DNA from: Paramoeba atlantica
Taxonomy: Eukaryota; Protista; Discosea
DNA: 64,000 nucleotides
Direction of reading: 5' to 3'
Assembly (NCBI GenBank): GCA_977017575.1
Contig: CDRNVI010000043.1
Coordinates: 682,001 to 746,000 of the forward strand
Both the position numbers and the translations under genes were made by a program. Shown in pieces: positions 4,473-37,619 of the stretch (position 1 is its first letter; each line of letters starts with the position of its first letter). The notes under the pieces were generated by a model. That model searched no databases and was not told where the DNA came from. It worked only from the letters and a program-made list of their open reading frames with translations.

Positions 4473-5580
4473 TTTCTCTTTGAAAATGGAGAGACGGGCG
4501 AGACGTGATCTCCTTTACCCCCCATTATGTTCCCTCTACCTTATATCCCATACCGTAAACTTATAATAGCTATATTAATTATACTTTTTTTTTTCTTCAA
4601 GTTTCCAATGTTTTTGTTTTTAATGTCAAATTCTAGAGGCCCATGTTTTGTGAATCGTCATTAGATAAATAATTTCTCAGCTGAGAGAATATAATCGACC
4701 CATTTAACTCCTGCAGGCACAGAGAAAATTCGTTCAGTGTTCGGACCCTATCAAGTCCGCTGCAGTCCGCCAACGTATGCAACAAGTGCCGGAGCCCGTG
4801 ATGCATAGCACCACCGGAGAGGACTGGGAGGCATACGAAACGCTCTTGAGGTATCATCCCGGAAGCCACGTATGTGCTGTGCTTGCGCGTAATGGCCTCT
4901 CTCATCAGGGTACCGCTACGTTTCCGTGCATTAGTGGGCGCCAGCTCGTGAATTATTGTTAGGTCATAAAAGATTTCCCCAGTTGCCCAATGTATTACAA
5001 TGTCAGGTCCTGACCGATGGAGGCTCGCATTTCTACAAACTTTTTGATGATCAGTTTTTCGCCATTGTGGGAACGATTCCCCGCATGTAGAGCATTTAAA
5101 AGAAGTAAACTGTCGAGGTTCCCTTTCGCATGGCACACCCGCCTTCATGCACAGTTCATAGATAATACGCACCAGATTATTATGTTTCATTGTTGTATTA
5201 TTTCCGGAACACTGGACGCATCCAGCTATGTGCGAAAAGGCTGATGAAGAATCCAGAAGGGTGCGACATCCTGGGCATTGCAGACTTTCGGGAATACGAG
5301 GGTGGCTTAGACCAAGACGTGGCATCAAAGCTAATGTGAAGAATTTGGAAGGCACTAACTTTGCCGTCGAATGAAGCCACGCGGAGTTCCCTTTTTCACT
5401 TGCTGCTCTCAGCACTGGTGCAACTTACTTCGGCTAGGGGGGACCTTCGATGAGTACTCATCGTAAGTTGTAGACTTTCGATGAGTCTCACGGAAAGTTG
5501 TAGACTTTCGATGAGTACTCATCGAAGGTGTTTTTGACTTTTTCACTTTTTCGTATTTTACTAAATTTTTGCGAAGGCTC

Positions 5581-19064: not shown

Positions 19065-19444
19065 CGACATCTGCGTCTTCCGTTTGCTTTCCGGATAGTC
19101 GCTAACGAGTATTTCATTGCAGACAAGGTCCGGTGCCATATGCGATTGCGCTGGGGGTATTGACATTCCGCGTAGTCACGTACAATATCACGATAGATGG
19201 CAATCACACTCGGTATGAATTCATAACACTCCACAAAGAGCGGCCATTGCACGGGCACTGCAGCAAAACAGCGCTTTCAAACCATTCATGCGGATGTTCT
19301 ACTGCGAATACGGCGACCCCTCGGACTTGCTTTTCTTTGCGAACAACCGCCTCCACACTACGATAAAGAGCACGTCCGGGGTACGGCAAGGCTCTGCGCT
19401 TTCCTCTCTTTACTTTTGTGCACTACTACAAGGAGCGTTGGTGG
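19065..19444. pseudogene. Truncated duplicate of the 5'-inverted element I
   Basis: Matches 39124-39503 and is cut at the duplication junction (19444). Confidence 0.8.
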
Positions 19445-19453
19445 GTATCCGGC

Positions 19454-22413
19454 CATGGGTATCCGGCTGGCGTGGGCGCTTTGCGGGGCGATGCCTCGGA
19501 GGAAATTCTTCGCATTTGTGGTGCGGGATAGTGCACACACGGCCACTTGAGTTGAGAAGCTTGGTGCCAACCTTCGCGTTTATGTCGTCAATAGATGATA
19601 GAAAGCCTTCTACTTCGGATGGATCCCAAGAGTCCATGTCTGCTGCAAAAGCAACCGAGGAAACGTAGGCTGAGGTTGCGTGAAAGGATGCTGACCGTAA
19701 CCCGAATCCTCCGTGTTTTTTCAGGCGCTGAATTTGGGACCGTGCAGAGGGAGGCAAGGGGCATAAACATGACTCTACCGCGTGCATGAGAAAATCATCC
19801 AGACGCTCGCATAAAAGTGTAAGTGATTGTGGTGGGGCCGTGCGGAGAGCGTGGACCATTTTGCAGAACCCGGCGCATTGCCGAATAAGCGCCATTGAAA
19901 CCTGTGGGTCTTTGATTCTAGTTATAGCTTCTAACGCCGTTTCTGCTGGTTCAATGGCGTGCGTTGTCAGGTATTCGGAGCAATACTCTGGGGATCCAAT
20001 CGGACTTCCTAGAACGCTAAAGTCGCCACGTACGTTGATTTTGGTGTCCGGTATGTCGGGAAACAAATTTGTCACGTTAGCCGAGGCAGGGGAGGTAATG
20101 ATTTCACACTTCGACATGTTCAAGTGCAAGCCCCAGCGAGGGCCTACCCTGGCGATCGTGTCCAGTGCATTTCTGGTGTCTTGGGCCTTGCCTATGAGAA
20201 CCCCGTCGTCAAGGTACCATAATTGTAGGTCCAAGTCGGCCTGGTGATTGATTTCGTTTGCTAATTCCAGGGCGACCAGGGAGAAGAAAAGAGGTCCGAG
20301 GGGGTACCCTTGTTGGACACCTTCGTCCGATAGGAGCGTGTGGGTTCGGTAAGTCAATGCACTAGTGGTGGTATAGCACCAGCTTGCCCATGGGAATAAT
20401 TCTGGGAAGTGCTCGCTTACAAGCTTCAGGAAGGCGGTTCTGCTAACGTTGTTAAAGGCGTTTCTGAGGTCTACTTTGCAAAGAACAAAGTCAGGGTTAT
20501 CAGTGTGGATGGCCATGGCTTGTCGACAAGTGTGGATTATGCGTTCAGCTCCGACTGGTGTCGCCACTCCGAACTGTAGCCCTGCGAATATGCCGCTTGC
20601 CTTGGCTTTAACTACGTTGCACGCAGTTTTGCTGACCAATCGACGAATAGTTTCCCCCGCAGCTATGGGTCGGACGTCGTTTTCGCCCTTTTCTAAGGCG
20701 CAAAGTCTGGCTCCGGCGAAATACGGTTGAACCTCTAGAGGGGCTTTACCGGCTAGAAGGTGATTTACGAGGTTTGTAATAGCTTTGAGAGGTTTCGTAG
20801 TGTTGTCTACCTGCGCTAGGAGTGCCACTTGTAGGTGTTCTGGGCGTAGGCCCATGGTTCCGGCGGAGGAGCCTCGGTGAAAGCTTTTGATGGTTTTCGC
20901 GACTGTCGCTTCATCTACCTGTAAGGGCGCTGTTGGTGGGGGGGTGTAATCGATGGCGTCGCTGTCTGAAAGGCGGCACGGGTGTTTGTTCTGAAGCTTG
21001 ATATACGTTTCTTCGTCGTCAGGAGCCATTGGGTCAGCCGTGAGTGCTGCCATTCCTCTTGAGTACTCGCCTTGTCGAACCAGCAATTCTGACCGGATGG
21101 CAGCTTTTTCCTCCTCATCGTGAACTATGTTAGGGGTTGCGGATTGCTTTTTGAGGGCGTTGTTTACTGTATCATTCCACAAGGGTACGTAATCTTGCGC
21201 CAGCCATCGGTTCATGCACTTTTCGACGAATGATGCGTATGTTGTGTGATTCTTGCGTCCTCCTCGGTGCGGAGCTGGTAGGAGACACTTCGGGAGCATA
21301 GCGAATAACGTCCACGCGGCGGGGGAGTTTTCCTTGACTGCGTTTTCGGCCGTTTTTGTTAAGATTTCTCCCCAAAGATGACGGCATCGGGCGGGGACGT
21401 CTTTGCAAGTGCTCAATTGTGTCTGAGAAATAGAGGCCAACGAGGGAAGCTCGGGTTGATGCATCTGAGTTGTGGGGGGGTGGCTTTCGTCGCTTGGGTG
21501 TGACATGTGTGATGGGCTTTGAGGGGTTGTCATCTTTCCCTTGCAGGACTGTGGGTGTGTTTCCCTTTTATTGACATCGTAAGAGCGCCCGCATGCAGCA
21601 CACAGGAATCTACCTTCTGTAGCCCACCAGGCGGCAGGGATGCTGCTACCGTGACGACAGGCGACGTGGTTATAAAACGCTTGCCACGATACCCCGTGCG
21701 CCGGGCTCCGCCAAGTGCATCCCATCGCCGGGCATTCTCGGAATTCTTCTCTGTTTTGTGTAACTTCGGTGGCTGAGTCCTTGGCCTCAGCTAGGAGAGG
21801 TGAGGGAGGGTTTTTCTCTGTCGCCGGTATTCGTTTAGAATGCCTCGTGTCTGTCTTCGTGGGTCCTTTCGAGGGAGAAACGTTGTGTAGCAGACGGGGA
21901 GAGACGTCCTGTACTACGGCATTAAGCTTCAGTGTTTTGTCGGGGGTCCGAGATGCAGGTGCGTTCTCATGAGTTGTGCTCTGCCGTCTTACCCCACAGT
22001 GTTGCATTTCCTCGTTTTCTGCCTCAGTATGGCCCGTGTCTGGAGTTTCCCTCTCCTGTGCAATTTGGCGTGCGTGATCCATCCATTCCGCGGGAATATC
22101 CATGGGGATCGGCGTGGTATAAAGTTGCTCGTTGTATGTACTTGCAGTGGAGATCAAGTGTTTGTTCCCCTCAAACTGGTCCCAACTGCCGAGTCGGTGG
22201 GAACGCTCTTCATCGGTGAAAGTGCCTTCGCTGAGCTTACCTTCGTTTGTGTTAGTCAATATGTGGGGTGAAGGTGGATTTTTGTCTAGGCTTGCGCGAG
22301 ATCGAAGACTTTGATCGCTTTTCATGGGGAAGGACGCTAATCCCCGGGGAGTAACTAAAGAAAGGAAAGATAATTCAACAAGGTACAGAAACTGTATCTT
22401 TATCGTTAAAGTT
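19454..22413 (-). mobile_element. A2: 3'-truncated near-identical duplicate of A1 (ATG 22325, SL 22376-22413)
   Basis: Offset 9736 from A1. It shares QGYP, shows one visible amino-acid difference (RTAPP vs RTTPP) and lacks the RLE. Confidence 0.9.
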
Positions 22414-22905
22414 TTTTTTTTTTTTATATCGGATCCAATCTCCATGCGAAGCGATCATATACAGAAGTAACAAAAATGAAATTCAACTAGTAGTAGATAT
22501 TTCTGTTGGTGTTTCAATACTACATAAGAAGTGTACAAAAGCTATCACTATAAATTCCTTTTCGAAAGAATCGTAGATTGATATATCTTTTTGACTAGCC
22601 TATATTGCGTTAGTAGTTTTCCGAAAACGAAAGCGTCCTAAAATATATATATATCTTTCGGAAAACCCCAACAGAAATACTCTGATTTTTTTATGCTATA
22701 AAAAATCCATTTATACTAAATTATCTTTTTTATATCGGATCCAATCTCCATGCGAAGCGATCATATACAGAAGTAACAAAAATGAAATTCAACTAGTAGT
22801 AGATATTTCTGTTGGTGTTTCAATACTACATAAGAAGTGTACAAAAGCTATCACTATAAATTCCTTTTCGAAAGAATCGTAGATTGATATATCTTTTTGA
22901 CTAGC

Positions 22906-25900
22906 CTATATTGCGTTAGTAGTTTTCCGAAAACGAAAGCGTTCAACGCCACGTCTGTCGCCACCTTGAGAAGGGATGTCATCCAGCCTAATGCACCTGG
23001 AGGGCTTATCTGCTAGGTTTCTATCCGAGGGACACCACATAACTTCTGTAATGTACCCCTTCACTTTGAACCAAAAAAGCTTCTTAAGCCAACTCATCAC
23101 TTTTGGTGGGCCTGCCCGCCAACGCGTTAGCCATGAAACCACATTCTTGTTGTCGGAAATTAAAGTGCTATTCCGTAAGTTTTTTTGTCTAACTAAATTC
23201 ATCCCCTGCTCCGCGGCATACAATTCTTTATATGCAATCGATGAATCTTTCAACCAAAAGGGAAACCTTCCAGCCTTATATTTTAGGTCGCCGTGCTCTG
23301 TCCAAGCCAAACCCCACCCTTGATCAGAGGCATCCACAAAAATTTCAAAAGAAGCGACGCTTTTTTCGTTTACTTTTCGAGGGCGATTCTTCTCTACTGT
23401 GTCAATAAGCTCTACAAGATCTGCAATGAACGCCTTTGACATAAAACAGGGTTTGTCCCATAAAGATTGATCGAATGCTATCCTACGGGATCGACCCCGG
23501 ACCCACAACATGACGCCTAAGAACTGACATTGCTGGATACCTAGAATTCGTGTGGCCCAGAAAAGAGTACCCAGTACCTTCCAAATTAGGCGATGAGAGG
23601 GAAAGAAACGACGTCGCTGCAAACATTTAAATGCCTCGCGTAGTGCAGCTAACTTTTGAAGAAAAAGTACGGGGAGTGAAAGAGTTTTCTTCTGGAGATC
23701 CACGTGTACTCCCAATATTGTGCCGCTCACCGTTGGTTGTGTAGTTACCAATATTTCGGCACCAGCACGGTCGGCTCGCTGCTGAATGTTTTGCAAATCC
23801 CCCGTGAGAGTTTCCGTATCATTCGCAAAACTATAGCCGTTATCTATAAATGTCAAAATTCGCTGTTTTTCTATTCCCTGGTACAAGACATTTGTCGCGG
23901 CATGGCCTATTTTCACCGACGCCTGCCAACCCATCGGGAGCGTAGCCCATCCGTATGTTCGCCCTTTGACACGGACTGCGAAGTAAGGGAGCAGCTTTGG
24001 CGGCAAGACGAATTGATGGTACCAACTCTTGCCATCCGTTTCGCAAAAGAAATTGTATTTGGCTACCAAGGTCTCTATATCTTTCAAAGATGCAAGGTCT
24101 AGAGGGCCTGGTACCATCTCTTGCATAGAGTTTAGTGGAATCGCGTTTAAGATGACACGCATAGATTGCTTCTTCACTTTGGGTATCAAAAATGATGTCA
24201 TCCATACTCTTACTGCTCGTCGTGGAATACGCTTCAAAATACCTGCTTGGAGCATCTCGCGGAGCACGGGTCCTAATTTTTTTGATTCGCCCCGATAACG
24301 CAGATCACGGAACTTTTTCAACAATTGCATAAACTTTTCCGGATTAATAATATAATCAAACAGTTCTGCCTCTTCACTCATATCTTCTTCCTTAGCCATT
24401 CTGACTAACTCGGTCAGATTGATTCTGGCGGACGAGACGGCGTCCAGCGGCCAATCTCGTTCACAGGGACGGGTTCTCTCTCCACGCTGGATTCGTCGAT
24501 TGTCAGGGAAGTGTATATTGACGTAGGTGGGGTAGGCGACGAATTCATACAGTATTTCCCACGGAGAGGTGCTCGCACCGACAGGTGCGGCGACGCAGGC
24601 TCGCCCATTACGGTGCTGAGCCTCGTCTTCTTTAAGTGACGCGCGTTTAGCGCTGTCTGAACTTCGTACTGGTCCTCTAGCGATGTTCCCTCCCCCACTG
24701 CGTTCACGTAGTCCGCAAGTTCTTTCTCCATCGCTCGCTTCCTTTTTCTGGTTTGTAACGGGGCGGTTAAGTCGGCTTTCAGCGGGTCTACTAGGTATCT
24801 CGGGACCCGGGACTTCGGAGGACTTGCGTCCGTGATAGAACCCTTCGGAAGCATGTGAACTACTCCTCGAGAGAAATCTTTTCGACACCATGTGGGGTTT
24901 TCGCCTTCGCCCATTTCGCGTAGCACCTCGCGCTCTGTGGTCAGGTACGGATAAGGTAGCGTCTGTTGAGGGATATGCCGATGAGGAGTGTAATAAGGGG
25001 TGGGAAGGTGGTGAGAGTCGAATTTCTGAAGTCGAGAAACGGGAGTTCGTGGATGATCTTCGTCCATCGGGATGGGGGGTAGCATTGCTCCTGCCTCGCG
25101 TGGTTGTTGTTGTTGTTGTTGGAATGCCTCGAGTGGTGTGGGGAGGGATGGCGGGATTGATTCGCGAGGATCGGGAGTTTCTGAATGATCTTCCATCATC
25201 ACGGGGGTTAACAAAGGTTCTTCCTCGCGTGACGTGGGGAGGGACGGCGGGATCGTGTTTGTTGGCTCGGGAAACCGTGATTCGAGAGGTGTCTGCAGCC
25301 GATGACTCACGCCTGTTGGTACGGGGAGTATTGGTGGGTCTGTACGAGGGGTTCGGCTGGGGGAGAGCGGAGTGGAAATTACTCGTATGTTTTTTACACA
25401 GCTTGAAAAGCTTAGGCGTCTGGGGAGGCTCGCCCTCTGCAGGATTCCCCACCGATCTTTTGGTGTTGAGCAATTCGATTGAGTGACCACTCCCATCGTT
25501 TGATCGACGGATAGAATTGAGCTGGGTCCGTTCGTCGGTCTTACCTCTTTCCTCAATGACTCGGGAGTATTTTCCTGCTGTATTTGAATGCTTCCCGTCT
25601 CCACGATAGTTTCGAGCGGCAGGAGTGTCTCTTCGGCTGGTGTGAATCCTCTTTTCTCTGCCGACAGGGTAGTTCTTGGCTCGTCGAGATCTGGCTTTTC
25701 TTCTCTCCGGGATGTCGTGGCTTGATTGTGACAAATTTCCCGGGTCTGCGTCGTAGGATGCTCGAAAGGCACGGCTACGTATTGTCCTAGTTTTCGAGAC
25801 ACCTCTAATCCCGCTATCGCTCTTGGGTCTAGAAACGAGCCGAGATACGCCCGCAGGGAAGCTTCGGAAACGTGCCGAGTCAGTTGCTGTATCGCTACTG

Positions 25901-27099
25901 CATCTTCCCCAGCCGCCGCGAGATGCTGGAGCGCGCCGCGTCTGATGGAGTACAAGGTGTGTTTTTCTTTTAGAAGAGGGTGACGAGTAACAACTGGGAT
26001 TTTTCTCAATCGCTGATCGATTTGGTGTAGCTTCACCCCGGGGAATAATTGCTGTTCGTTTGCCTCTCGTCTCCGCCATATCTGATTCACCACAAGGTCG
26101 CTCCAAAATGCCGGAACGTACATTCTTACACAACGCGGACTTAAGCGTTCCGTGGTCGTGGTGTTTTTGCACATTTGGTACATCCATATACTTAATTGCA
26201 ATTCGTGGTTGTTCTCCATCATCGCTATATCGCATACTTTCTGGTTTATCAGGTCTCCTGGTCGCTGGCCCGAAAGCCAGTAGATTATCAGGAATGTTTT
26301 TTCCTCGTCGCAGAGCCCCGGTCCGGCGAGGAAACTCTTCAAACCGGCTAGATCCATGGGACACGCTCTTATTGCTGGACTCGCCCTCCGGTGCATCGCT
26401 CCTTTGAGGGCTTCTATTTTCTTTAATGGGAGCGGCGATCCTCGCAAAGCGTATTCGTTCCCCAAATGGCAAAGGTATTGAGAAACGGTTTGTCCCTTTA
26501 AACCTTCTGTTTCGTTCAGATGCACCGCAAATGCGGCTAGGTATATCTCCTCCTCGAGGTAATGTCCGTAGTCTCGGAGCCGCCCCACATAACTTTGATA
26601 CCGTCGCCATATGCGACGCATAATGTCCCTTGTTCCTTCCGCGAACTTCTCGCGAAAGACATTTTCGGCTTTCAAAACTTCTTGGCAGACTGTTTCTTCT
26701 GATAATTGCTGTATAACTATATTTTTTGGTATTTTTGTTTGTAATAATGACCCCTCTTTTGGGAAAGATCGGCCGGCGCCGAGGAAACTTTGCATTAGGT
26801 GCACTGTACGGTCTTCTCCCTCCCCGTACAGTTTGATGGGGCGTCCGGCCCCGGGGCCGAGTCACTGAGACCCGGCGATGTTGTGGCCGTTTCGGGAGGC
26901 CATTCCCCGTCCGCCTCGGGCGCGCCCTACGCCTCGGAAAGGTCCTCGAAAACGCTCTCCGTACCCGCGCCCTCCTCCGTTTTTTGCGTTCATAGCGGCT
27001 CCTTGCGCGATCGACATATTTTGGTAATACGACATGGTCGCCTCGTGCGCCTGGGTATATTGATCGTCCATCGGGGCGCTCCGCGCAGTTTCTTTCCAA
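22906..27099 (-). CDS. RT-RNase H of VIPER-like 1 (-1 frame; catalytic domains in ~22906-24400)
   Basis: FLIPK, RVILN, DGKSWYHQF, LPMGW, FIDN; RNase H motifs FVDAS, KEL, SDN, NLADKPSR. Confidence 0.88.
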   Translation of the reverse strand: MERNCAERPDGRSIYPGARGDHVVLPKYVDRARSRYERKKRRRARVRRAFSRTFPRRRARPRRTGNGLPKRPQHRRVSVTRPRGRTPHQTVRGGRRPYSAPNAKFPRRRPIFPKRGVIITNKNTKKYSYTAIIRRNSLPRSFESRKCLSREVRGRNKGHYASHMATVSKLCGAAPRLRTLPRGGDIPSRICGASERNRRFKGTNRFSIPLPFGERIRFARIAAPIKENRSPQRSDAPEGESSNKSVSHGSSRFEEFPRRTGALRRGKNIPDNLLAFGPATRRPDKPESMRYSDDGEQPRIAIKYMDVPNVQKHHDHGTLKSALCKNVRSGILERPCGESDMAETRGKRTAIIPRGEATPNRSAIEKNPSCYSSPSSKRKTHLVLHQTRRAPASRGGWGRCSSDTATDSARFRSFPAGVSRLVSRPKSDSGIRGVSKTRTIRSRAFRASYDADPGNLSQSSHDIPERRKARSRRAKNYPVGREKRIHTSRRDTPAARNYRGDGKHSNTAGKYSRVIEERGKTDERTQLNSIRRSNDGSGHSIELLNTKRSVGNPAEGEPPQTPKLFKLCKKHTSNFHSALPQPNPSYRPTNTPRTNRRESSAADTSRITVSRANKHDPAVPPHVTRGRTFVNPRDDGRSFRNSRSSRINPAIPPHTTRGIPTTTTTTTRGRSNATPHPDGRRSSTNSRFSTSEIRLSPPSHPLLHSSSAYPSTDATLSVPDHRARGATRNGRRRKPHMVSKRFLSRSSSHASEGFYHGRKSSEVPGPEIPSRPAESRLNRPVTNQKKEASDGERTCGLRERSGGGNIARGPVRSSDSAKRASLKEDEAQHRNGRACVAAPVGASTSPWEILYEFVAYPTYVNIHFPDNRRIQRGERTRPCERDWPLDAVSSARINLTELVRMAKEEDMSEEAELFDYIINPEKFMQLLKKFRDLRYRGESKKLGPVLREMLQAGILKRIPRRAVRVWMTSFLIPKVKKQSMRVILNAIPLNSMQEMVPGPLDLASLKDIETLVAKYNFFCETDGKSWYHQFVLPPKLLPYFAVRVKGRTYGWATLPMGWQASVKIGHAATNVLYQGIEKQRILTFIDNGYSFANDTETLTGDLQNIQQRADRAGAEILVTTQPTVSGTILGVHVDLQKKTLSLPVLFLQKLAALREAFKCLQRRRFFPSHRLIWKVLGTLFWATRILGIQQCQFLGVMLWVRGRSRRIAFDQSLWDKPCFMSKAFIADLVELIDTVEKNRPRKVNEKSVASFEIFVDASDQGWGLAWTEHGDLKYKAGRFPFWLKDSSIAYKELYAAEQGMNLVRQKNLRNSTLISDNKNVVSWLTRWRAGPPKVMSWLKKLFWFKVKGYITEVMWCPSDRNLADKPSRCIRLDDIPSQGGDRRGVERFRFRKTTNAI
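24414..26804 (-). CDS. Tyrosine recombinase of VIPER-like 1, in frame with gag beyond one TGA
   Basis: Catalytic-type motifs SGQRPGD, YSIRRG, LTRH and AYL, followed by a long low-complexity C-terminal extension. Confidence 0.85.
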   Translation of the reverse strand: MHLMQSFLGAGRSFPKEGSLLQTKIPKNIVIQQLSEETVCQEVLKAENVFREKFAEGTRDIMRRIWRRYQSYVGRLRDYGHYLEEEIYLAAFAVHLNETEGLKGQTVSQYLCHLGNEYALRGSPLPLKKIEALKGAMHRRASPAIRACPMDLAGLKSFLAGPGLCDEEKTFLIIYWLSGQRPGDLINQKVCDIAMMENNHELQLSIWMYQMCKNTTTTERLSPRCVRMYVPAFWSDLVVNQIWRRREANEQQLFPGVKLHQIDQRLRKIPVVTRHPLLKEKHTLYSIRRGALQHLAAAGEDAVAIQQLTRHVSEASLRAYLGSFLDPRAIAGLEVSRKLGQYVAVPFEHPTTQTREICHNQATTSRREEKPDLDEPRTTLSAEKRGFTPAEETLLPLETIVETGSIQIQQENTPESLRKEVRPTNGPSSILSVDQTMGVVTQSNCSTPKDRWGILQRASLPRRLSFSSCVKNIRVISTPLSPSRTPRTDPPILPVPTGVSHRLQTPLESRFPEPTNTIPPSLPTSREEEPLLTPVMMEDHSETPDPRESIPPSLPTPLEAFQQQQQQPREAGAMLPPIPMDEDHPRTPVSRLQKFDSHHLPTPYYTPHRHIPQQTLPYPYLTTEREVLREMGEGENPTWCRKDFSRGVVHMLPKGSITDASPPKSRVPRYLVDPLKADLTAPLQTRKRKRAMEKELADYVNAVGEGTSLEDQYEVQTALNARHLKKTRLSTVMGEPASPHLSVRAPLRGKYCMNSSPTPPTSIYTSLTIDESSVEREPVPVNEIGRWTPSRPPESI

Positions 27100-27647
27100 T
27101 AGCGGCCGTATTCTCGACCAAACTTATGTTTGTAACGAAGATAGTGCAAATTCTCAAACGCGGGCTCCACTGAAACCATCGAAAACGGACGTCCTGCTCG
27201 CGCGTGCAACCCGCAATCTTGGAGGTGTTTCGAGATCGTGTCGAGACTTTCTCTCAAACTTATGGCATCCCCCGCAACCGCACCAGGATCTTTTGAGTTT
27301 CCAAATTGTTTGCGAATTTCATGCTCCAATCGTCCAATTAAATTGTCCCGGTATAGATCACTGCAGAAATGTCGGTATTCCCATTCTTTTGGGCGGAAAA
27401 GCTTTTCGTGGGGGAGGTCATGGGCCGCAGGATCATACCCGCCCGGCGCCGACACACTCTTTGCTGCCATTCCCAGAGCTTCCCGAATTTGCGCGGATTG
27501 CCGCTCCACCGTAGCTTCCAACATACCGATGCGCTCTTGATCAATCTTCGTTGACGCCATGAGTTCCTCCATACGCTGCATCATTCTGGTATTATCCCCC
27601 AACTGCTGGATCACATCTCTCGGAGAGGGTGGCTGACCTTCGGCCAT
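26862..27647 (-). CDS. Gag-like ORF1 of VIPER-like 1 (261 aa; coiled coil, RGG-rich tail)
   Basis: First ORF after the 5' repeat, with heptad-like N-terminus and an RG-rich C-terminus. Gag assignment is by position. Confidence 0.7.
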   Translation of the reverse strand: MAEGQPPSPRDVIQQLGDNTRMMQRMEELMASTKIDQERIGMLEATVERQSAQIREALGMAAKSVSAPGGYDPAAHDLPHEKLFRPKEWEYRHFCSDLYRDNLIGRLEHEIRKQFGNSKDPGAVAGDAISLRESLDTISKHLQDCGLHARAGRPFSMVSVEPAFENLHYLRYKHKFGREYGRYWKETARSAPMDDQYTQAHEATMSYYQNMSIAQGAAMNAKNGGGRGYGERFRGPFRGVGRARGGRGMASRNGHNIAGSQ

Positions 27648-30600
27648 GGGAATGGACGATTAGTTAGTAGTTTTCCGAAAACGAAAGCGTTCTAAAATAT
27701 ATATATATCTTTCGGAAAACCCCAACAGAAATACTCTGATTTTTTTATGCTATAAAAAATCCATTTATACTAAATTATCTTTTTTTTTTTTCTTTTCTTT
27801 ATTTTTTTGAAACTATCCGTAGAAACCAATTTGAACAAACTAATAATACTATAACATTCACTGTCGTTTTTTTTTTCCGTTCCTTTAGATATTATGTATA
27901 TAATAATACATATAGGCATTGAAAAAAACGAAACTATGTTGATACATTTGGCTCAAATGCTGTACCTGCTGCTGCCTTCCGGGGATAAGTGGTTCCGCAA
28001 CTGGGCGTACACTTCCGTCCCATTCAGTTCCTGAAGTAGGAGCTTGAACTCCATTTCAGTTGCTCGACGATTTAAGAGTGCCGCGTCGGATAGGACATGC
28101 AACAGAGATCTCGTATTTTGATGAAGAGAGCCGCAGGACAGCACTGGGATGCACTGAAATGCGAAGTCGGGAATTTTTCCGGATGTCACATATGTATCCC
28201 GTTTCCGCTTGATTGCATCTGTAAGAAGCTGGGAGCAAGATTTCGCTTGATTGGAGTTCGATAGCTCGTGCACCACAGTTAGATCATAAAATATTTCCCC
28301 GGTTGACCAATATATCACCAAATCAGGCCCTGAGCGAAACAGCTGACGTCCGGCACATGTTTTGTCATGAATCATTTTGTTGCTTGGAAACACTTTATTC
28401 TTGCAAATTCCGCATTGCCAAGTCGAAAAAGATCGCGGTTCTTTCTCGCATTGTATACCGGCCTTTTGTGCCAAATCGAAGATATACTTAACCAGCCGAT
28501 TGTGCTTCATTGTGGCATTAAGCCCTGTACATTGGACGCATCCGGGGATGTGCTGCAAAGCTGTTTTGTTGTCGAGTAACATACGACAGCCGGGGCACAG
28601 CAGCGATTTCGGGAGTCGAGGATGAGGCATCCCAAGGCGTGTCATGATTGCAATCTGAAATGCACGCGTGGGTACAAATTTAGCATTAGACTGTAACCAG
28701 TCATAGCTTCCTTTCCGTGTGGTGGCATTTAATATTGTGGCTAGCTTGGGATCGTGATCCTTTAAAGCCTCGTATGCTTTCTGGTGCAATTGCGCGGCTG
28801 TTGTTACTTCATCGATTGGGGCGACCACTGCTGTTTGACTCATTCCATTATCCATGATAGCGGATACGTTACTCACATTGCCCGCCCGAGCAGAAATTGA
28901 GTTTTTGCGCTCTAGAGCTAGGTAACGAGAAGTTTCGTATGACGCCGCACGAATACTATGACATGATGTCAGACCGAGGCCTCCTTTCTTTAGCGGCAGC
29001 CGAGCCAATTCGATTTGCTCTTTGGTCATTTCTCCCAACCACTGGTGCAGCACTTTTTCGACGTTGTTGTCGAAACTGAGAGAGACCGCGTCGGTTAACG
29101 TTGGCTCGTGCACTCTTATGGCGTATTGATGCCTCACATTCATGCTTTTGGAAAGTAGCAAAAGTGAGACATTGTTGGCGCCCATAAGTTTTAATCGGCG
29201 AAAGGCTTCGGTATTCCTGACAAGCTGCTGAAACAAACCCGACTTTACAGATTCATCTTCTCCAAGGTGTGCCCCAAGGATCTTTATAGAATCGTACGCA
29301 GCCTTGACCCCTTCATTTGCAAGCTGTTCTGGAATCGGGATTTTTTCCTGTCCACCGAACCACACGCATTTTCCAGGAGCAAGTTCAATGTTGTGAGCAT
29401 TCACCATTTCTTGGAGCCTTACAAATGCTTTGGCCAATGATTGTGAGTTTTTCGAAGCCATGTTCACGTCATCAATAAATGCATATATTTCGATGTCGGG
29501 AAACTCTTGTTTCAGAATCTCCAATAGTGGCTGCAGGAAGGCGCAGTAGTATAGAGATGCCAGCGGGGAACCTTGCCGCAAACCACATGTGCTGGGAATG
29601 ACTCCGAATAGCGTTCCATCGGATCCGTAATACAGTAGCTCTGAGGGTTGGCCGTATTCAGCGTGAAAGATCCGTTGAAACGGGCGTAGTGTACCACAAG
29701 CAAATACGTGTTTGGCGATATCCGCCCTATTCGGGGAGTTGAAGGCGTTTTTGGCGTCAATGGAAAGAATGACGTGTCCAGACTTAAAACGCTCATGCAG
29801 TCTATGAACGATTTTTTCGCATCCTGCCTTTGACGAAACGCCGTGTTGCAGTGGTGCAAAAAGAGGGCCCAAAGTGTGTTCGTAGCGCTGGAGCAATATA
29901 ACGCCGGCAAGCTTCATAAATATCTCGCCCATTGCCACTGGTCTGACTCCTCCGTTGGATTTAGGAATGGCTACGAGCCGTGCTCGGTTTAATCGAAACA
30001 AAACGCTGTGATCCACGAATCCGTTGATTAGATCCGATATCATATGGGCAAGATTAGTGCATGAGATCTCATCATCGAGCATGAGTTGCACAATCCCGTC
30101 TGTCATTCCAGTTGGGCCAGGGTTTACGCCTTTTGCGAGTCGCTTCCCTGCTTTCCGTAGCTCCTCCGTCATTATCCCGCTAATTATCGGCGCATCCTCC
30201 GGCAAAGAAATTTCGTATTGTCTTTGCGGATGTAAGGCGGCAAGCTTGTCAAGGGTCTCTTCATCCGTTAGTTGCTTTGGTGTAAAGGTCTGATCCAAGA
30301 CCTTGGCCGCCTTGGAAGTACATCCATCCAATACTAGCCTTGTCGCTCGTTTGATGGCTCGTGTATCGCTCAGTGTCTCCTCTTTTCGCTCACCGTCATC
30401 GGGCTCCCGTAACGGGCGCCGTCTTCGCCTTTTTCCACTGTTTTCTCGAACAGTCGCTAGGGATAACTTAATGGCTGATAGCAAACGGTGCCATATTTTT
30501 GTTCTTTGCGTGTGATCGGAATTTATATACTCCTGGACGATGTTCCTCAGCACCACGACAACACACGGAGCGAGGTCAGGGCTTATTGAACGTAGCGTGG

Positions 30601-32770
30601 GTATTGGTAACAAATCCACTGATGAATCATCTTTGGCTTTTTCTGGAAAGTTCATCTGATGATTCTCCAGAAACGCATCCCTTTGCACAGTAGTATCGAT
30701 CGCTGGCGGCGCTTGATGCCACGCTAGTTTATAGATCCGTACGTCCTCTTGTGGAGGTAAAACCCCGGAAAATTGTTCCCCAACTTTGTGACCAACAACG
30801 CCCCGATACGAGATAGATAACTTACCAAATCCTCCACGCTTACTATGTGTTCGAGTGACTTTGCCTATTGAGATGTTAAGCGCACCTTGTTTGTTAAATG
30901 TCCAGGCCACTGTACACATTGCGCCCGGTTTGATTTGCTTCGAATGCGTCCAAATCTCATCCGGCGAGGCCGGAAATTGTGACTCGGGCGTTACATTCTT
31001 CATCAGGTCAAAGGATTTGTTCTCCTCTGTGCTTGGGTCGATTCCGATAAACATGATCGCTGAATTTTTCTCGTTCTGTGACTTCGTTGCATTTGGCTCC
31101 CGCTCGGGTAATTCCGCATCGATTTTGGGACTTGATGGAGACCCCAACTGAGAGAGAAGCTGATCACGTTGGTTCGTTTTTTTCATGGGAGTTTCGGGAG
31201 TGTTGCACTCAAAAAACTGACGTGGCTCATCTGACGGGGAAGACGGCTCTTCAGAAAAAACATCAAAATTGTGAACGTCGTGCACGTAACCATTACCGAT
31301 CCATCTGTATCCTTCAAATCGAGGGTCTTTGGGATCTGGATGCATCTCGATGTTGGTTTCATTGGCGTCATTTGCTACCGTCGGCGGAGTATTCGTGTTC
31401 ACTTGAGAATTCCCGTGATGTGATTTATGACATGTAACCGCTGTTCCATTTGTCGATTCCGCTGTCACGTTCTGGATCCTTATCCGAGTTGAATCATCCT
31501 CGTTTCGCAGTTTCACTGGTGATGGACTGTGGCTGCGATTAGGAAGTTGAGGCAGCTGAATGCTTTGCTGACTGCTTGCAATCGATGTCAAAGTTGAGAC
31601 AGCTGCGCCGCACGTTTTCGCTGCCATGCCGCACGATTTCGTGATAATGGAACTCCATCCATTTACTTGATACAGAGTTTTGCTAATAGGAGAAGATTGG
31701 ACTATGCGCGGTGCTACCGAGGCGTTCTTTCGCTGAGCTTCTCGTTTTTCTTTCTGCATGCGTGTCCACAAATCGTTGAACGTTTGCCTCCGAAATCCAC
31801 GGCGAGGGCATCCGGACATTAACATAATCAAATCACGAATATGATAAAGTAAAGAAGTATCTAATTGAAAACATAGCTTATGTTGAACGTCTACTTCTCG
31901 TTATGCTATGGTTCCTCTTATGATGCTAGTAGATTTCTCCTATTTCTGAATAACGCGCGCTGTATAAATATTCAAAAAGGGGCCCTGGTACCACACAATT
32001 AAACTCAGAATGTTGAAGAAAAGGGAATACTTTGTGAAGGGGCTTAGCCCCCCACGCTCCGCAGCCGTGGCTGGGGGTTGGTGGGTGGGCTTCGAAAACG
32101 TGTAAATAAACTTTGAAGAATAGCCTTCACACAACACAAAATCAACAAACAGAGCAATATTTCTACCAGAAACAATACATACATATTATCAATAATTTCA
32201 CTTGAAATGTAATCATATAAAAGCTTAAAATACAGCGCGTACAATGCCCGCCGGCCACGTAAGTAAATAGCCCTCGCCTAAATTTCTTACCGTAAACTTT
32301 TAGAAATCCACGGCGAGGGCATCCGGACATTAACATAATCAAATCACGAATATGATAAAGTAAAGAAGTATCTAATTGAAAACATAGCTTATGTTGAACG
32401 TCTACTTCTCGTTATGCTATGGTTCCTCTTATGATGCTAGTAGATTTCTCCTATTTCTGAATAACGCGCGCTGTATAAATATTCAAAAAGGGGCCCTGGT
32501 ACCACACAATTAAACTCAGAATGTTGAAGAAAAGGGAATACTTTGTGAAGGGGCTTAGCCCCCCACGCTCCGCAGCCGCCAACCCGCTCACTCGTAATGA
32601 ATTCCTTGTCACTGGTAACTAAAATCACTACCTGTATGAAGAATGCTCGAAAATTGACCAGACTTTCGTAGCGTCTCCAAAACCTAAACGAAACTATTTT
32701 TTTTTTTTTTTTTTTATTATTATTATTATTCTATATAAACTAAATTTCATATAAATACGGTTGAATCGAA

Positions 32771-35443
32771 CTATCGTGCAAAATTCCTACTGACCGGGTC
32801 TGCCGGGTTGTCTTTCGTTGAGACGTAATCGGCCTTGATGCAGACGCCCCGGTCCTTCGCCCATTGCAAAACCTTACCGAGTTGGTTTGATATTCCTCCT
32901 GATTTTGAAATTTTTCTGTTTAGCGCTGCTTGGCACGAAGTGTTATCTACCCATAATTGCAAGCACGTGCCCCGGGTGAAATGTCTCTCCAACTTCTGGA
33001 GGGAAAGTCTAACGGCTGTCGCTTCTGCCCTATTTACTTCGTATTGCCAAGAGGATTTCCATTGCCCCCCCACGATGATCACTTCGCCTGAATCGAGGTA
33101 GAGGATGCCTCCCCATCCTTTCGCTGAGGCGTCTGTATACAAATTATGCTCCCGGGGAGCTATTTCAGGATGCGGGAGAGGTTCAACCGGTATGTTCCTA
33201 ACAAGTTCATTTCGCCACTGCCGTAGCATATCTCGTATTTTGTTCGGTAGATCCACTACCTCTTCGGCCATCTCCGGCATGCGGTTTAACAAGTTTATGC
33301 GGCGTTGACATATTTTAAGGGCGAAATAGTATTTTGGAATAATAATTCCCACTACTGAGGAGCAGTACAGGAGGCGCCCCACCGTCGCCTCGAGCTCCAG
33401 AAATGTAGTACGTGTAAATTGATCCTTCTCCAATTTTGCGACAACTTTGGGTCCCAGGTTGACCTTGTGTACGCGATGGTCGTACCTAACACCGTTAAAT
33501 ACGTACTCCTTCATGGGAAGGAGTCCCGAGTCTTTAAAGCGCGCTCCTGTCTCTTGCGCGCGGTCATCAACCCATTTCTTGTACTGACAGGCCTGCTGAT
33601 CTGTACCAGCAAACCGTACACCGTCCACGTAGATATCTAATGCGCCTTGTGAAAAGGTTGATTTACAGTATCCCTTCATACCGGCGATCGTAGCCGTGAC
33701 TGTGTGCATCAATTCCGGGGCGCACCGATGCCCCATCGGCAAAACGCGCATTTCATACAACACCCCCGTGTCTGAATAAAACCGAAATTTTTGACGACAT
33801 TCCTGCGGAATCGAGATTTGATAAAAACCACATACTAGGTCCCTCTTCAGACCTGACTGCGCCTTAACTCTATGCAAATATTTAGATGGATGTAGTAGGG
33901 GTACCTGAGGAACGTATTCACTCAGCCGAGCGTTGTCAGAACGCGTCCAAGAAATAAATCGTCGACGTTGCTTGCCCTCATCGTCCGTTTCAATTACCGT
34001 GAAAGGAACCAGAAATTGCATTGAGGGACGTTTGTTTTCTTCCTTTTCGGATACCGCAGAAATAATACCATGCTTAAGTAAGAGCTCGTGATCTGTATGG
34101 CTCAAACTTCCTTTCATACGAGGAGATGTTTCAGGGCAAGATGGCATGCGTAATAATTCTTTCCAAACCTGTTCGAATCTTGAGGCGGTAGCTGTAGACA
34201 TCCAGCTTCGAATTTTATTCATGTCAATAGTTGGAACTCCCGGCTTGACGTGTAACGGAATATGAAAGTCCTTCGGCTTTGCTAACTTAGAACTCCGGCG
34301 TGCACAAACTAATGTATGTCGTTTTAAGTAAGGGACTTCTTTATAACACTCTTGCATTTCTACTGGAGAAAGGGTCCGGGCAATCGCGCTGACACTCGGT
34401 GCGTGCCCAGTGCTCTTGCTGTCGTCAACTGCTGAGCATTGTATCGGAGAAGACTCTCTAAGCTCAGATGCTTTGTGAGGATTTGCACCTCCGGCAAGTT
34501 GAGGTGGCCGTTGGCGACTTCCTGAAGTAGATACGTTACAGCCCCCCGTTTTATAGAGTGGGTGCCATACCCGTTTCCTAGCACCCTTCTTATTTCGTGG
34601 TCCATCTCTCGAACTGTGGTCCTGCACAGTTTTTGGTTTTTCGGAAGGCGTCTCAAGTAATTCGCTATTTGCTCTGTCCCCGGTCCTGATATTATGGCGT
34701 GCATGTATGGGCGGTATGGATTGAGACGTGTTGTCTTTGTGCTTCTTCCCCAATAAATCACGATTTCCTGCTCGGCAATGCTCAGAAATTGGTCGGCCTG
34801 TAGCTCGGCGACTTCCGTCCAGCGCGCTGCAGCCTTCCAGCAAATCAAGATTGCGATGGCCTGTGATGGCGTGACGCTTTTGTAAAGTTTCGTTAGCAGA
34901 TACTGTGTTAGAGGTTGCATCTGTCGATGAGGTTCGAGAGCTCCCTGCGCTTGCAGCGCCTTTGAGTATAATTTCAGAGGAATTGTGTTTTCGTTCATTA
35001 GAGTGTACATCGTATGCAACCCGCGGGCGTACGCTAATCTTGTCGACATTGCCAATTTTTGTGCATCGAGGAATAAAACGGCGTTGAGAGCGGAAGGCTG
35101 TATCATTTTTACTCGACAAAAGTCCTCCATTCGACTCCATATTGCCTCTCTCGACCTCCACGTAGTGTGAGCCCACATGGGACGAATTGCGTCTCGTAGC
35201 ACCGGAGCGTTCGCGTCCTCGGTCTGGATCCCTAACATTTTGTTTGTCAACATAACGCGTCTCACTCTTGCTGTCATCGGCAACTCGGCGCGGTTCGAAC
35301 TTCTCTTCACACATATATGATCCGTCAAGCTTGCGTTTTGACTTGTCTGTGTCACGAGTAACGGCCTCCTGGCCCTCTTCTGATTTCCGTCGGTGCTCAC
35401 ATATCGAGCACCGTTCCATACAAACTTTATGCGCGAAGCGCAC
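32771..35443 (-). CDS. RT-RNase H of VIPER-like 2 (-1 frame, open from 35653)
   Basis: RRFISW, DLVCGFYQ, LPMGH, IYVDGV; RNase H motifs YTDAS, RAEA, VDN, NPADPVSR. Confidence 0.88.
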   Translation of the reverse strand: MRFAHKVCMERCSICEHRRKSEEGQEAVTRDTDKSKRKLDGSYMCEEKFEPRRVADDSKSETRYVDKQNVRDPDRGRERSGATRRNSSHVGSHYVEVERGNMESNGGLLSSKNDTAFRSQRRFIPRCTKIGNVDKISVRPRVAYDVHSNERKHNSSEIILKGAASAGSSRTSSTDATSNTVSANETLQKRHAITGHRNLDLLEGCSALDGSRRATGRPISEHCRAGNRDLLGKKHKDNTSQSIPPIHARHNIRTGDRANSELLETPSEKPKTVQDHSSRDGPRNKKGARKRVWHPLYKTGGCNVSTSGSRQRPPQLAGGANPHKASELRESSPIQCSAVDDSKSTGHAPSVSAIARTLSPVEMQECYKEVPYLKRHTLVCARRSSKLAKPKDFHIPLHVKPGVPTIDMNKIRSWMSTATASRFEQVWKELLRMPSCPETSPRMKGSLSHTDHELLLKHGIISAVSEKEENKRPSMQFLVPFTVIETDDEGKQRRRFISWTRSDNARLSEYVPQVPLLHPSKYLHRVKAQSGLKRDLVCGFYQISIPQECRQKFRFYSDTGVLYEMRVLPMGHRCAPELMHTVTATIAGMKGYCKSTFSQGALDIYVDGVRFAGTDQQACQYKKWVDDRAQETGARFKDSGLLPMKEYVFNGVRYDHRVHKVNLGPKVVAKLEKDQFTRTTFLELEATVGRLLYCSSVVGIIIPKYYFALKICQRRINLLNRMPEMAEEVVDLPNKIRDMLRQWRNELVRNIPVEPLPHPEIAPREHNLYTDASAKGWGGILYLDSGEVIIVGGQWKSSWQYEVNRAEATAVRLSLQKLERHFTRGTCLQLWVDNTSCQAALNRKISKSGGISNQLGKVLQWAKDRGVCIKADYVSTKDNPADPVSRNFAR

Positions 35444-35520
35444 AAGTATCCTGGCAATTTCGCTCGCTGCCTCTTCAAGGCTCGAGCACGAGTAGGAATT
35501 TTTGGGGTGGGGGACAATCC
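34360..35520 (-). CDS. Tyrosine recombinase of VIPER-like 2, in frame with gag beyond one TAG
   Basis: AARWTEV, HSIKRG, LTKH, LRYN. Confidence 0.85.
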   Translation of the reverse strand, partial: GLSPTPKIPTRARALKRQRAKLPGYLCASRIKFVWNGARYVSTDGNQKRARRPLLVTQTSQNASLTDHICVKRSSNRAELPMTARVRRVMLTNKMLGIQTEDANAPVLRDAIRPMWAHTTWRSREAIWSRMEDFCRVKMIQPSALNAVLFLDAQKLAMSTRLAYARGLHTMYTLMNENTIPLKLYSKALQAQGALEPHRQMQPLTQYLLTKLYKSVTPSQAIAILICWKAAARWTEVAELQADQFLSIAEQEIVIYWGRSTKTTRLNPYRPYMHAIISGPGTEQIANYLRRLPKNQKLCRTTVREMDHEIRRVLGNGYGTHSIKRGAVTYLLQEVANGHLNLPEVQILTKHLSLESLLRYNAQQLTTARALGTHRVSARLPGPFLQ

Positions 35521-36564
35521 CTATTGGATCGTCCGTCTTTCGCCGCGACGGAACGTTGTCTGCGTCTGTGCAGCGCCACTCGCCACCCCCCGGGAGAAAA
35601 CCGGTTGACGTAGCTGGGGACAGTTCGCTCGTATATGCCCAGGAGCACGACAGTTATAGCACAGTTGCTGCTGCCCTTGGCGACGATTTATACGTGTTTG
35701 CTTCAATTGCTCTTCGAGCATCGTTTTACCATAAACGTCTTCGGGGGTAGAGACCTGGTGGAGTCTTTGCTGTACGCGCTCTACCGGCGCACCCGCAGCA
35801 GCCCAGTAATGATTACGGAGTTCTTCAATCAAGCCAGTTGCAATTTCATAAAAATATCCTGTTGACCAGTCTTGCAGCTGACGAGCTGCGTAGATCCACT
35901 TTGTCAGAAGTTGGAACAGTCGTTCTCGCGCAGGCGGGGGATTAAAACGAACTCCTAACTCCGGGGTGTCCCGTAACTCGCGGATCAACTCACGCGGTTT
36001 AAACTCATCTTCTGACTCCACCCAAGGGCCCCACGTCTTCGGAATCACCGGGGAAAAATCCTTGGGGTCCGACACCGGTACGCGCGCGATGGAAGTTACA
36101 GGGTTTTCCACATGCTCCCCCCCGGGCATCCTGGCCTGGACCTTCGCAAGTTCGATGGAGAAATAGTGTATGTCAGGAAACGGAAACCCGTACTCAACAT
36201 CAGGCTCGTCGTCCCACCGGGCCTTCAACTCACTCCCCACCGGGTCTTCGGGATTGAGAAAATAAACTCGTCCCGTGACAGTGTGGCGCGCGTTGTCGTC
36301 CTTGTGTCCCCAAATAGCGCGAATCCATACGCGGTGGCCCCGGGTAAGTAAAAAACGGACTTTTTGCGAAAAATCGGACTTTGCGGAATCACTAAGCGGG
36401 GTCGCTATATCCTCTCCTTGCAATATACCCTCAACCTGGTCAGGGTTGAGAGTATGACGGGTCGCCCGAGGAGAACTGCGAGGAGACTCAGGAGGTACCG
36501 GATCAGGGCTGCGTGCACGTCCGAGTGATATCGCTCTAGAAACCGCGCTCACAATGCGTGACAT
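35521..36564 (-). CDS. Gag of VIPER-like 2 (~347 aa from MSRIVSAV) with CCHC zinc knuckle
   Basis: CYNCRAPGHIRANC. The ATG at 36564 follows the 5' repeat directly; the ORF-track extension lies inside that repeat. Confidence 0.85.
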   Translation of the reverse strand: MSRIVSAVSRAISLGRARSPDPVPPESPRSSPRATRHTLNPDQVEGILQGEDIATPLSDSAKSDFSQKVRFLLTRGHRVWIRAIWGHKDDNARHTVTGRVYFLNPEDPVGSELKARWDDEPDVEYGFPFPDIHYFSIELAKVQARMPGGEHVENPVTSIARVPVSDPKDFSPVIPKTWGPWVESEDEFKPRELIRELRDTPELGVRFNPPPARERLFQLLTKWIYAARQLQDWSTGYFYEIATGLIEELRNHYWAAAGAPVERVQQRLHQVSTPEDVYGKTMLEEQLKQTRINRRQGQQQLCYNCRAPGHIRANCPQLRQPVFSRGVASGAAQTQTTFRRGERRTIQ

Positions 36565-37619
36565 TCTTCGAAAACGTGTAAATAAACTTTGAAGAATAGC
36601 CTTCACACAACACAAAATCAACAAACAGAGCAATATTTCTACCAGAAACAATACATACATATTATCAATAATTTCACTTGAAATGTAATCATATAAAAGC
36701 TTAAAATACAGCGCGTACAATGCCCGCCGGCCACGTAAGTAAATAGCCCTCGCCTAAATTTCTTACCGTAAACTTTTAGAATGTTTGACTTTGAAATTGT
36801 AATTTTCATGGTTTTCTGAGACCTGATGTTTGGTGATTCTGATGCGACGTTTGGCGTAACGTTTGTCGACGAGAGCGATGGTGGAAATTCTGAATCTTTT
36901 CGTGAAACCGCAACTGGTATTGTTCTTTGTGGCGTGACCATCTCGTGAGCCTTGCGGTGCGAGAATCCTTTAGGCGGTTGAGGCGTCTCCGTTGAAGCAC
37001 CTTGTGGGGGAGAGGGGCTCAGTCGGATTAGCTGTGGTGAGGCGAGCGGGGGTGGCATAGGGCGCGGTAGAGCTGAGGGGGCGGAGGAGTTCAGAAGCGG
37101 CGGAGAATGGAGCGGTCGACGATTACGTGCGGCTCTCGTTGGAAACCGTGAAGGGAAGTGCGCCGCAAGGGTATCATAGAAGGAGGGTTTCTTTGCCATA
37201 ATTTTGTCAGGTTGACTTGGTGGTGAGCTCGGCTGCGGTAGTGTTGTTGGCTGCGGTGGCGGTAATGGTGGCGGCTGTGGAAGCGTTCCCGGTGACAGCG
37301 GTGTCGTTGGCAATGGCGGTGGCTGTCGCATGGTTCGGGACGGCGATGGCGTCTTTGGTGATTCCATTCGTTCTAGTCGCATCTCTGTACTCGGATGTGT
37401 GGAATTCAAGGACGGGGACGGCGTCTGCGGGGGATGCGGGGGGGATTTCTGCGGGGGCGGCGCACCTAGCGGAGAGTTCGTGGTTAGTCCTGTTCTCTTT
37501 TTGCGCCGGGTGACAGGCAGAGGCAAAATCTCAGGAGCTACTCCCGATTCTTTCGCCTTGGAGCGGGTGACCACTCCCATAGAAATGTAGAAAGTAAGAG
37601 GTAATAATTCAACAAACTC

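Follow-up and report, generated by a model that had tools for sequence, protein, structure and literature searches.

Candidate -1 ribosomal frameshifting from gag into reverse transcriptase in VIPER/TATE-type retrotransposons

The DNA considered here is a 64,000-nucleotide stretch of contig CDRNVI010000043.1 (GenBank assembly GCA_977017575.1, Paramoeba atlantica), positions 682,001 to 746,000 of the forward strand. We call this whole stretch the window and number it from its first letter. It contains two retrotransposons, elements 1 and 2, each of which encodes a Gag-like protein, a tyrosine recombinase (YR) and a reverse transcriptase with RNase H (RT/RH). The RT/RH lies in the -1 frame relative to gag, and that frame is open from inside gag across the entire YR gene. 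How, then, is the RT/RH made? The answer that the sequences favor, and in which we have good confidence, is programmed -1 ribosomal frameshifting at a heptamer near the end of gag, which would yield a Gag-RT/RH fusion.

Two elements in one window

Both elements are intact, young VIPER/TATE-type tyrosine-recombinase retrotransposons of the order DIRS. Their gag-like gene, YR and RT/RH follow one another in that order on one strand, and each element carries split direct repeats in the arrangement A1 ... B1-A2-B2 that has been described for VIPER/TATE (PMC6681497). Since the copies of these repeats are 99-100% identical, the elements in the window are recent rather than decayed. Their features are as follows.

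Element 1
27663..27785, minus strand: A1, the 5' split direct repeat, 99% identical to 22609-22731
26862..27647, minus strand: gag-like open reading frame (ORF) of 261 codons, stop TGA at 26864-26862
24414..26861, minus strand: YR ORF of 815 codons, in the gag frame behind one stop
22906..27123, minus strand: -1 frame with RT/RH, 1405 codons, from inside gag across all of YR
26979..26985, minus strand: slippery heptamer A_AAA_AAC, in the gag frame (AAA 26984-82, AAC 26981-79)
26973..26978, minus strand: spacer GGAGGA, 6 nt
26918..26972, minus strand: candidate stimulator, GGGCGCG (26972-26966) pairing with CGCGCCC (26924-26918) and enclosing an inner hairpin
22415..22942, minus strand: 3' split direct repeats B1 (22942-22721), A2 (22731-22609) and B2 (22636-22415), 99% identity

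Element 2
36566..36781, minus strand: A1, the 5' split direct repeat, 100% identical to 32090-32305
35521..36720, minus strand: gag ORF with a CCHC zinc knuckle, stop TAG at 35523-35521 (the true start is probably an internal ATG)
34360..35520, minus strand: YR ORF of 386 codons, in the gag frame behind one stop
32771..35653, minus strand: -1 frame with RT/RH, 960 codons, opening inside gag after TAA 35656-35654
35596..35602, minus strand: candidate shift site G_GUU_UUC, in the gag frame
35590..35595, minus strand: spacer, 6 nt
35504..35589, minus strand: predicted three-way junction closed by GGGGUGG (35589-35583) pairing with CCACCCC (35510-35504), enclosing the UAG
35512..35534, minus strand: inner hairpin with the gag UAG within its loop
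31800..32578, minus strand: 3' split direct repeats B1 (32578-32311), A2 (32305-32090) and B2 (32067-31800 or beyond), 100% identity

The coordinates that the initial annotation gave for the frames, heptamers, spacers and stems of both elements are all correct.

The product of element 2's -1 frame has 22 protein relatives. Its RT is 30% identical (E 3e-59) to a Trypanosoma theileri protein, itself 38% identical to the RT/RH of Trypanosoma cruzi VIPER; the RT of element 1 is more distantly related. A Pfam search of the YR of the two elements gave no match, and the recombinase motifs (R...HxxR/KxxR...H...Y-like) were read from the translations, where they align between the two. Pairwise BLASTP between the two elements found only 30% identity over 132 residues of YR, and tblastn at 1e-3 found no match between them. 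Because they are barely alignable, we count them as two independent families and, for the argument that follows, as two independent witnesses. An Rfam search of positions 22000-37500, up to an E value of 1, returned no match.

Element 1 has the longer recombinase ORF. Its putative catalytic region occupies the first ~380 codons and is followed by a Pro/Thr/Ser-rich tail; this low-complexity tail, the last ~435 codons (24414-25700, minus strand), stays open while the RT frame overlaps it. TATE elements are reported to have long YR ORFs of 580-980 aa, so element 1 may be TATE-like. In its -1 frame the RVT_1 match covers residues 984-1116 (~24150-23752), and RVT_1 and the RNase H region together make up the last third of the 1405 codons. 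Homology of the RT frame to its relatives starts at about residue 733, some 170 codons before the YR ORF ends and over the low-complexity YR tail.

The comparison drew on relatives of both elements. Those of element 2 are paralogous families from one ENA assembly, L002 to L006, found by protein searches; L002, L003 and L005 are intact, and L004a-c and L006 are broken copies that, like another broken copy, L007, were uninformative. The element-1 family adds L001, a dead copy whose gag is 42% identical to that of element 1, and L014, a 3.9-kb Logan contig whose gag is 27% identical and whose gag-stop-YR layout is intact. Further afield are a VIPER copy from T. cruzi Dm28c (L012) and copies from Diplonema papillatum (L008, L009, L010 and L010b among them).

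The open frame across the recombinase gene

Within gag, the -1 frame of element 1 contains 8 stops, the last of them the TAA at 27126-27124; the next stop comes at 22908-22906. The frame opens 138 nt before the heptamer and runs on for 1359 open codons after it. In element 2 the corresponding figures are 51 nt and 943 codons. Upstream of the opening, the -1 frame within gag carries the expected load of stops in both elements, and the +1 frame over YR holds 54 stops in element 1 and 31 in element 2. Only the -1 frame across YR, the stretch that we refer to as the corridor, is free of them, as the initial annotation had claimed for both elements.

As a chance test, the synonymous codons of YR were shuffled 2000 times, keeping both the protein and the codon usage. 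Shuffled versions of element 1 had a mean of 25.1 stops in the corridor and those of element 2 a mean of 12.2; the real sequences have none, and in neither case did a single shuffle of the 2000 reach zero. The same is true of L002, L003, L005, L012 and L009, which like the two window elements have zero corridor stops where 8-25 would be expected (0/2000 shuffles each). Because synonymous shuffling never arrives at zero stops, the open frame is under selection. A corridor open merely by chance is ruled out by these shuffles together with a GC content of only about 50%.

What selection maintains here is not, it seems, a protein sequence. Between family members the corridor product is 25-34% identical, as against 45-59% for the YR encoded by the very same nucleotides; its translation is low in complexity and rich in Arg, Ser and Pro, and a Pfam search of it found no domain. 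The corridor behaves as a frame that has to remain open rather than as a conserved protein. In every element examined the frame opens within the 3' part of gag, 15-324 nt upstream of the heptamer.

The first AUG in this frame lies 129-822 nt past the heptamer in elements 1 and 2, L002, L014, L009 and L010b, and the frame is already open before that AUG. The Poisson probability of the stop-free stretch before the first AUG is 0.02-0.27 per element; downstream of the heptamer in L003 it is 0.0015.

The heptamer, the spacer and the stem

In-frame canonical heptamers occur at a background of about 1 per 295 codons, and A_AAA_AAC is the only one in the 262-nt overlap between gag and the -1 frame of element 1. 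It lies 114 nt before the gag stop; the heptamer of element 2 lies 72 nt before its own. The stem that begins 6 nt downstream in element 1 appears in both the minimum free energy (MFE) and the centroid folds. So does the structure of element 2, with a z score of -2.0 relative to dinucleotide shuffles, and its closing stem recurs in the folds of L002 and L003. The site of element 2 is not canonical, as its P-site codon would re-pair imperfectly; it fits the known G_GUU_UUU class.

Layout, heptamer, 6-nt spacer and stem all recur in the paralogous families, which are 45-65% identical in protein. In L002, L003 and L005, gag, a single stop and YR share one frame, and the -1 frame holds RT and is open from 145-262 nt upstream of the gag stop onward; 10-12 corridor stops would be expected and none occurs. 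The homologous heptamers are G_GAU_UUU (L002, L003 and three copies in L004), G_GGU_UUU (L005) and G_GUU_UUU (the fourth L004 copy). Five divergent copies of the element-2 family spell out one cassette: G_GNU_UUY, 6 nt, GGGGUG(G/A), a loop of 41-72 nt, and CCCCACCCC immediately beyond the UAG. No member of the family departs from a 6-nt spacer, and the invariant columns of the alignment are concentrated at the heptamer, at both arms of the stem and at the stop. The arms themselves do not vary among the five aligned copies with an intact cassette, across which the loop ranges from 41 to 72 nt in length. Even the synonymous positions within the arms are invariant, and the next synonymous position outside them varies. 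Three compensatory pairs among six sequences are seen in the inner hairpin, whose loop contains the UAG; this is a weak signal, since the hairpin was specified by hand from those same sequences.

Two loci of this family deserve a separate word. L004 carries three tandem gag-end pieces at 740-4963, spaced about 2086 nt apart, each with G_GAU_UUU and a weakened stem (CGGGUGG...CCACCCA). The frame leading up to the gag stop of L005 (1153-4614) has 1153 open codons, far more than the 374-483 of the other gag ORFs in the family.

The element-1 family tells a similar story for the heptamer and a less uniform one for the structure. A_AAA_AAC in the gag frame is invariant across element 1, L001 and L014; in L014 the -1 frame opens only 30 nt before it. 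L001 has a different stem of 9 bp, starting 9 nt downstream of the heptamer (z -1.8), and the fold downstream of the heptamer in L014 shows no convincing stem. GG tracts are abundant right after the heptamer in all three members, which raises a G-quadruplex as a possible alternative stimulator in this family.

In T. cruzi, the Dm28c copy has gag (492 codons) and YR (338 codons) in one frame, and both agree in size with what Ribeiro et al. published. The RT frame of this copy is open from 360 nt upstream of the gag stop and crosses the corridor with 0 stops where 11.6 are expected. A_AAA_AAC stands 28 nt before the gag UGA and is followed by the 6-nt spacer GGCCGA and then by a perfect 9-bp stem, GGGGCUGCC pairing with GGCAGCCCC, which encloses the UGA. 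The fold has an energy of -37.4 kcal/mol and a z score of -4.8. Three families in Diplonema papillatum have G_GGA_AAC, again a 6-nt spacer, and a 9-bp stem, CCCGGGGGA/UCCCCCGGG, that surrounds the gag UGA; three of the copies have a -1 frame that goes on from there for at least 880 codons. Canonical heptamers are found in element 1, L001, L014, L005, T. cruzi and Diplonema. Because the cassette is present both in T. cruzi VIPER and in Diplonema papillatum, it can be read as a frameshift cassette common to kinetoplastids and diplonemids.

The initial annotation had pointed to conservation of the heptamer, the spacer and the open -1 frame as a check on its proposal. The heptamer is kept within the element-1 family; a heptamer with a 6-nt spacer is kept within the element-2 family and occurs in T. 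cruzi VIPER and in Diplonema; and the -1 frame is free of stops across YR in the two window elements, L002, L003, L005, L012 and L009. Among diverged relatives the signal is more conserved than coding would explain, though dual coding could account for part of this. Its central proposal, a Gag-RT/RH fusion through a dual-coded linker kept open by selection, is supported by this comparison of paralogous families, Logan contig, T. cruzi VIPER and Diplonema.

Other loci contributed less. L015 (a distant RT with no recognisable YR) and L013 (no YR) are uninformative. In L011, from T. theileri, RT lies in the -1 frame of a broken YR. At L013 5001-8042 sits a T. theileri gene for a VIPER-RT-like protein of 1013 aa, flanked by enolase and importin-like genes and lacking YR and gag; it resembles the domesticated VIPER-derived gene described in PMC5146736. 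In the window itself, two further RT ORFs with RVT_1 matches flank element 1 on the minus strand (19410-22445 and 27953-31831), one of them with an LsmAD-like N-terminal match. The region around element 1 is a nest of retroelements.

Routes to reverse transcriptase and recombinase

In the mechanism that we propose, a single full-length RNA would be translated from gag. A fraction of the ribosomes would pause at the heptamer on the RNA structure that starts 6 nt downstream, slip back by one base and go on in the -1 frame. That frame would carry them past the gag stop and across the stop-free corridor over the whole of YR (about 350 codons in element 2 and about 700-900 in element 1) into RT/RNase H. 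The product would be a Gag-corridor-RT/RH protein of about 1580 aa for element 1 and about 1260 aa for element 2, which are the sizes predicted in the initial annotation. Ribosomes that do not slip would terminate at the gag stop. The slippage itself, its efficiency and the fusion as the active RT are what we infer from comparing sequences. The stems would suit a stimulator of frameshifting better than one of readthrough, because they enclose or precede the gag stop and a ribosome standing on that stop would already have melted them.

The well-known gag-pro/pol frameshifting of retroviruses and LTR elements uses the same kind of arrangement: a slippery heptamer in the gag frame near the 3' end of gag, followed after about 6 nt by a GC-rich stem or a more elaborate fold, and pol in a -1 frame that opens shortly upstream, with Gag-Pol made at a fixed ratio from the genomic RNA. 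A_AAA_AAC is the site used by MMTV, HTLV and BLV. The window elements differ in using a tyrosine recombinase rather than an integrase and in having no protease. They differ also in scale: the shift site and RT are separated by 350-900 codons that overprint a second, complete gene, where retroviruses have a short overlap. The element-2 family shares its non-canonical site, G_GNU_UUY, with the G_GUU_UUU of cardiovirus 2B* and arterivirus nsp2TF, at which only the A-site tRNA re-pairs perfectly. At these sites the stimulus comes from a viral protein that binds 11-14 nt downstream, whereas the element-2 family has an RNA stem at 6 nt and nothing that indicates a trans-acting protein. On this point the initial annotation, which had the cardiovirus site stimulated by a structure 5-9 nt downstream, needs correction: the cardiovirus structure is protein-bound and lies about 13 nt downstream.

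Long overlaps between genes have parallels elsewhere. In DIRS1-like elements the overlap is between the 3' end of pol and the 5' part of YR, which is non-catalytic (PMC3266345). There, as here, a YR retrotransposon has two long ORFs that share their nucleotides over hundreds of codons. Unlike DIRS1, however, the elements described here have a 5' extension of pol that overlaps the whole of YR, catalytic domain included, and links pol to gag. The spacer of the hepadnavirus polymerase is overprinted on preS and, like the corridor, is a long, poorly conserved, disordered linker of an RT, encoded in an alternative frame over a second functional gene. Translation of the hepadnavirus P protein has a start of its own and does not depend on frameshifting from the core gene.

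The layout of the ORFs was on record before us. The Repbase VIPER consensus places ORF1 at 169-1509, YR at 1510-2517 and RT/RH at 1386-4214, with overlapping genes and alternative start sites (PMC5146736). Published VIPER/TATE elements have the same gag-YR-RT/RH order and split repeats; YR begins right behind the ORF1 stop, and the RT/RH ORF has its start within ORF1 and extends over all of YR, as we verified on T. cruzi Dm28c. The phrase "two overlapped ORFs" has been used of them (PMC12278014, PMC6681497), and an older review describes VIPER as usually without ORF overlaps (PMC3266345). A full-text literature search on VIPER and YR retrotransposons, whose reach did not include the original VIPER paper of Lorenzi et al. 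2006, found no mention of frameshifting, a slippery site or a stimulatory structure. The initial annotation knew of no such description for VIPER/TATE. For frameshifting in this class of element that apparently stands; for the ORF layout it does not.

There is another way of making RT/RH that has to be taken seriously, namely to translate it by itself from a start inside the element, an AUG or near-cognate codon of the -1 frame, whether through spliced-leader (SL) trans-splicing, leaky scanning or reinitiation. Kinetoplastids process polycistronic RNA by trans-splicing, as is well established, alternative starts are given for the third VIPER gene in PMC5146736, T. cruzi VIPER, L003 and L005 carry a -1-frame AUG 15-87 nt upstream of the heptamer, and in Diplonema even copies that bear a corridor stop have the look of recent amplification. 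We nevertheless consider an independent start unlikely. It leaves unexplained why the frame in most elements is open for 43-274 codons before its first AUG, why the opening always falls inside the 3' end of gag, and why heptamer, 6-nt spacer and stem are kept from Diplonema to Trypanosoma. Less likely again is a shift somewhere else, for instance late in YR after readthrough of the gag stop to give Gag-YR-RT, or a corridor that encodes a separate functional overprinted protein, with the heptamer incidental. Gag and YR do share one frame behind a single stop in every element, and there are in-frame heptamers inside YR as well (four in element 1). But a late shift would not require 350-900 open codons upstream, the heptamers inside YR are not conserved between relatives, and the corridor, poorly conserved, low in complexity and without a Pfam match, makes a poor candidate for a protein in its own right. 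Least credible to us is that the polymerase stutters on the six A residues of A_AAA_AAC and adds one, so that a minority mRNA has gag and RT in one frame. The A run is there in element 1, L001, L014 and T. cruzi VIPER, and potyviruses and some bacterial elements are known to show slippage at runs of this kind. The homologous site, however, is only U4 in the element-2 family and A3 in Diplonema, too short for stuttering and yet retaining the 6-nt spacer and the stem, and a stem 6 nt downstream is the signature of ribosomal rather than transcriptional slippage.

Several observations count against frameshifting at the gag-end heptamer, and we set them out together. Two full-length Diplonema copies (L008 3795-4020 and L010 2639-2864) share one corridor TGA, the result of a TTC-to-TTT change that is synonymous in YR. 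Since these copies are 99.9% identical and sit in different flanks, a copy bearing the stop may have spread by transposition, perhaps in trans; the TGA is lacking in a 5'-truncated sister copy, L009 (2824-3050). A contig from another sample with the same organism label has a G>A change at 25728 that creates a corridor TAA and is likewise synonymous in YR. (At 26646 the same contig lacks 3 nt, which leaves both frames intact.) The initial annotation had named stops in the overlap frame of intact relatives as evidence that would speak against it: there are none in L002, L003, L005, L012 and L009, and the two Diplonema copies do have one. The AUG upstream of the heptamer in T. cruzi VIPER, L003 and L005 belongs here too.

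The structures add further reservations. The element 1 stem proposed in the initial annotation is recovered in the MFE fold, but the energy of its region is unremarkable (z +0.8 relative to dinucleotide shuffles) and its position is not conserved, with another stem in L001 and no clear one in L014. In the element-2 family the invariance of the outer stem and its arms could be due in part to dual coding. RNAalifold on this family returned the invariant outer stem only and no compensatory pairs; because the outer stem never varies, it has no support from covariation. Four of the five heptamers in this family are not of the canonical form X_XXY_YYZ. A search of sequencing runs placed the locus only in DNA-type runs, and one run that is possibly RNA gave a single 210-nt contig, in RT. 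Finally, neither element encodes a protease that would release RT from Gag.

The recombinase poses the converse problem, since it lies in the gag frame behind a stop. Two observations concern the sequence around that stop. Directly after the gag UGA of the element-1 family, the N-terminus of YR is conserved (AGRP-x-x-LY), with no AUG nearby. Two codons past the gag UAG of the element-2 family there is AUG or a one-base variant of it (UUG, ACG, AUG, AGG, AUG).

Conserved YR N-terminus: 26790-26864 of the window, minus strand; L001 about 7345-7400; L014 845-900
AUG-like codon after the gag UAG: 35515-35517 of the window; L002 about 4906; L003 about 4618; L005 about 4621

The stop is UGA-C in element 1, L001, L014 and Diplonema and UAG-G in all members of the element-2 family. 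The conserved in-frame N-terminus, the lack of a nearby AUG and the stop context fit readthrough as the route to YR. In T. cruzi VIPER an AUG directly follows the gag UGA, and AUG-like codons near the gag stop make termination-reinitiation an alternative. Taken together with the -1 shift, this suggests a scheme of dual recoding in which a single gag ORF on an RNA that is not spliced would serve for both enzymes, with the shift giving Gag-RT/RH and readthrough or reinitiation giving YR, an arrangement that would be older than the split between diplonemids and kinetoplastids. We put this forward tentatively, at a little less than an even chance of being right.

Were this scheme to hold, no longer transframe corridor would be known from any eukaryotic mobile element, and the cassette would be the first recoding signal described for the order DIRS, present in hundreds of copies in the T. 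cruzi genome. Kinetoplastids and diplonemids have almost no transcriptional control, and frameshifting would explain how their YR retrotransposons express RT without a promoter or a splice site. It would give the published and unexplained "overlapped ORFs" of VIPER/TATE a testable mechanism, and would change their annotation to a Gag-RT fusion in place of an ORF3 begun at an arbitrary AUG. It would also add a natural -1 frameshift cassette for studies of recoding in Euglenozoa. The corridor, finally, is a clear example of selection holding hundreds of codons free of stops over a functional gene without holding their sequence.

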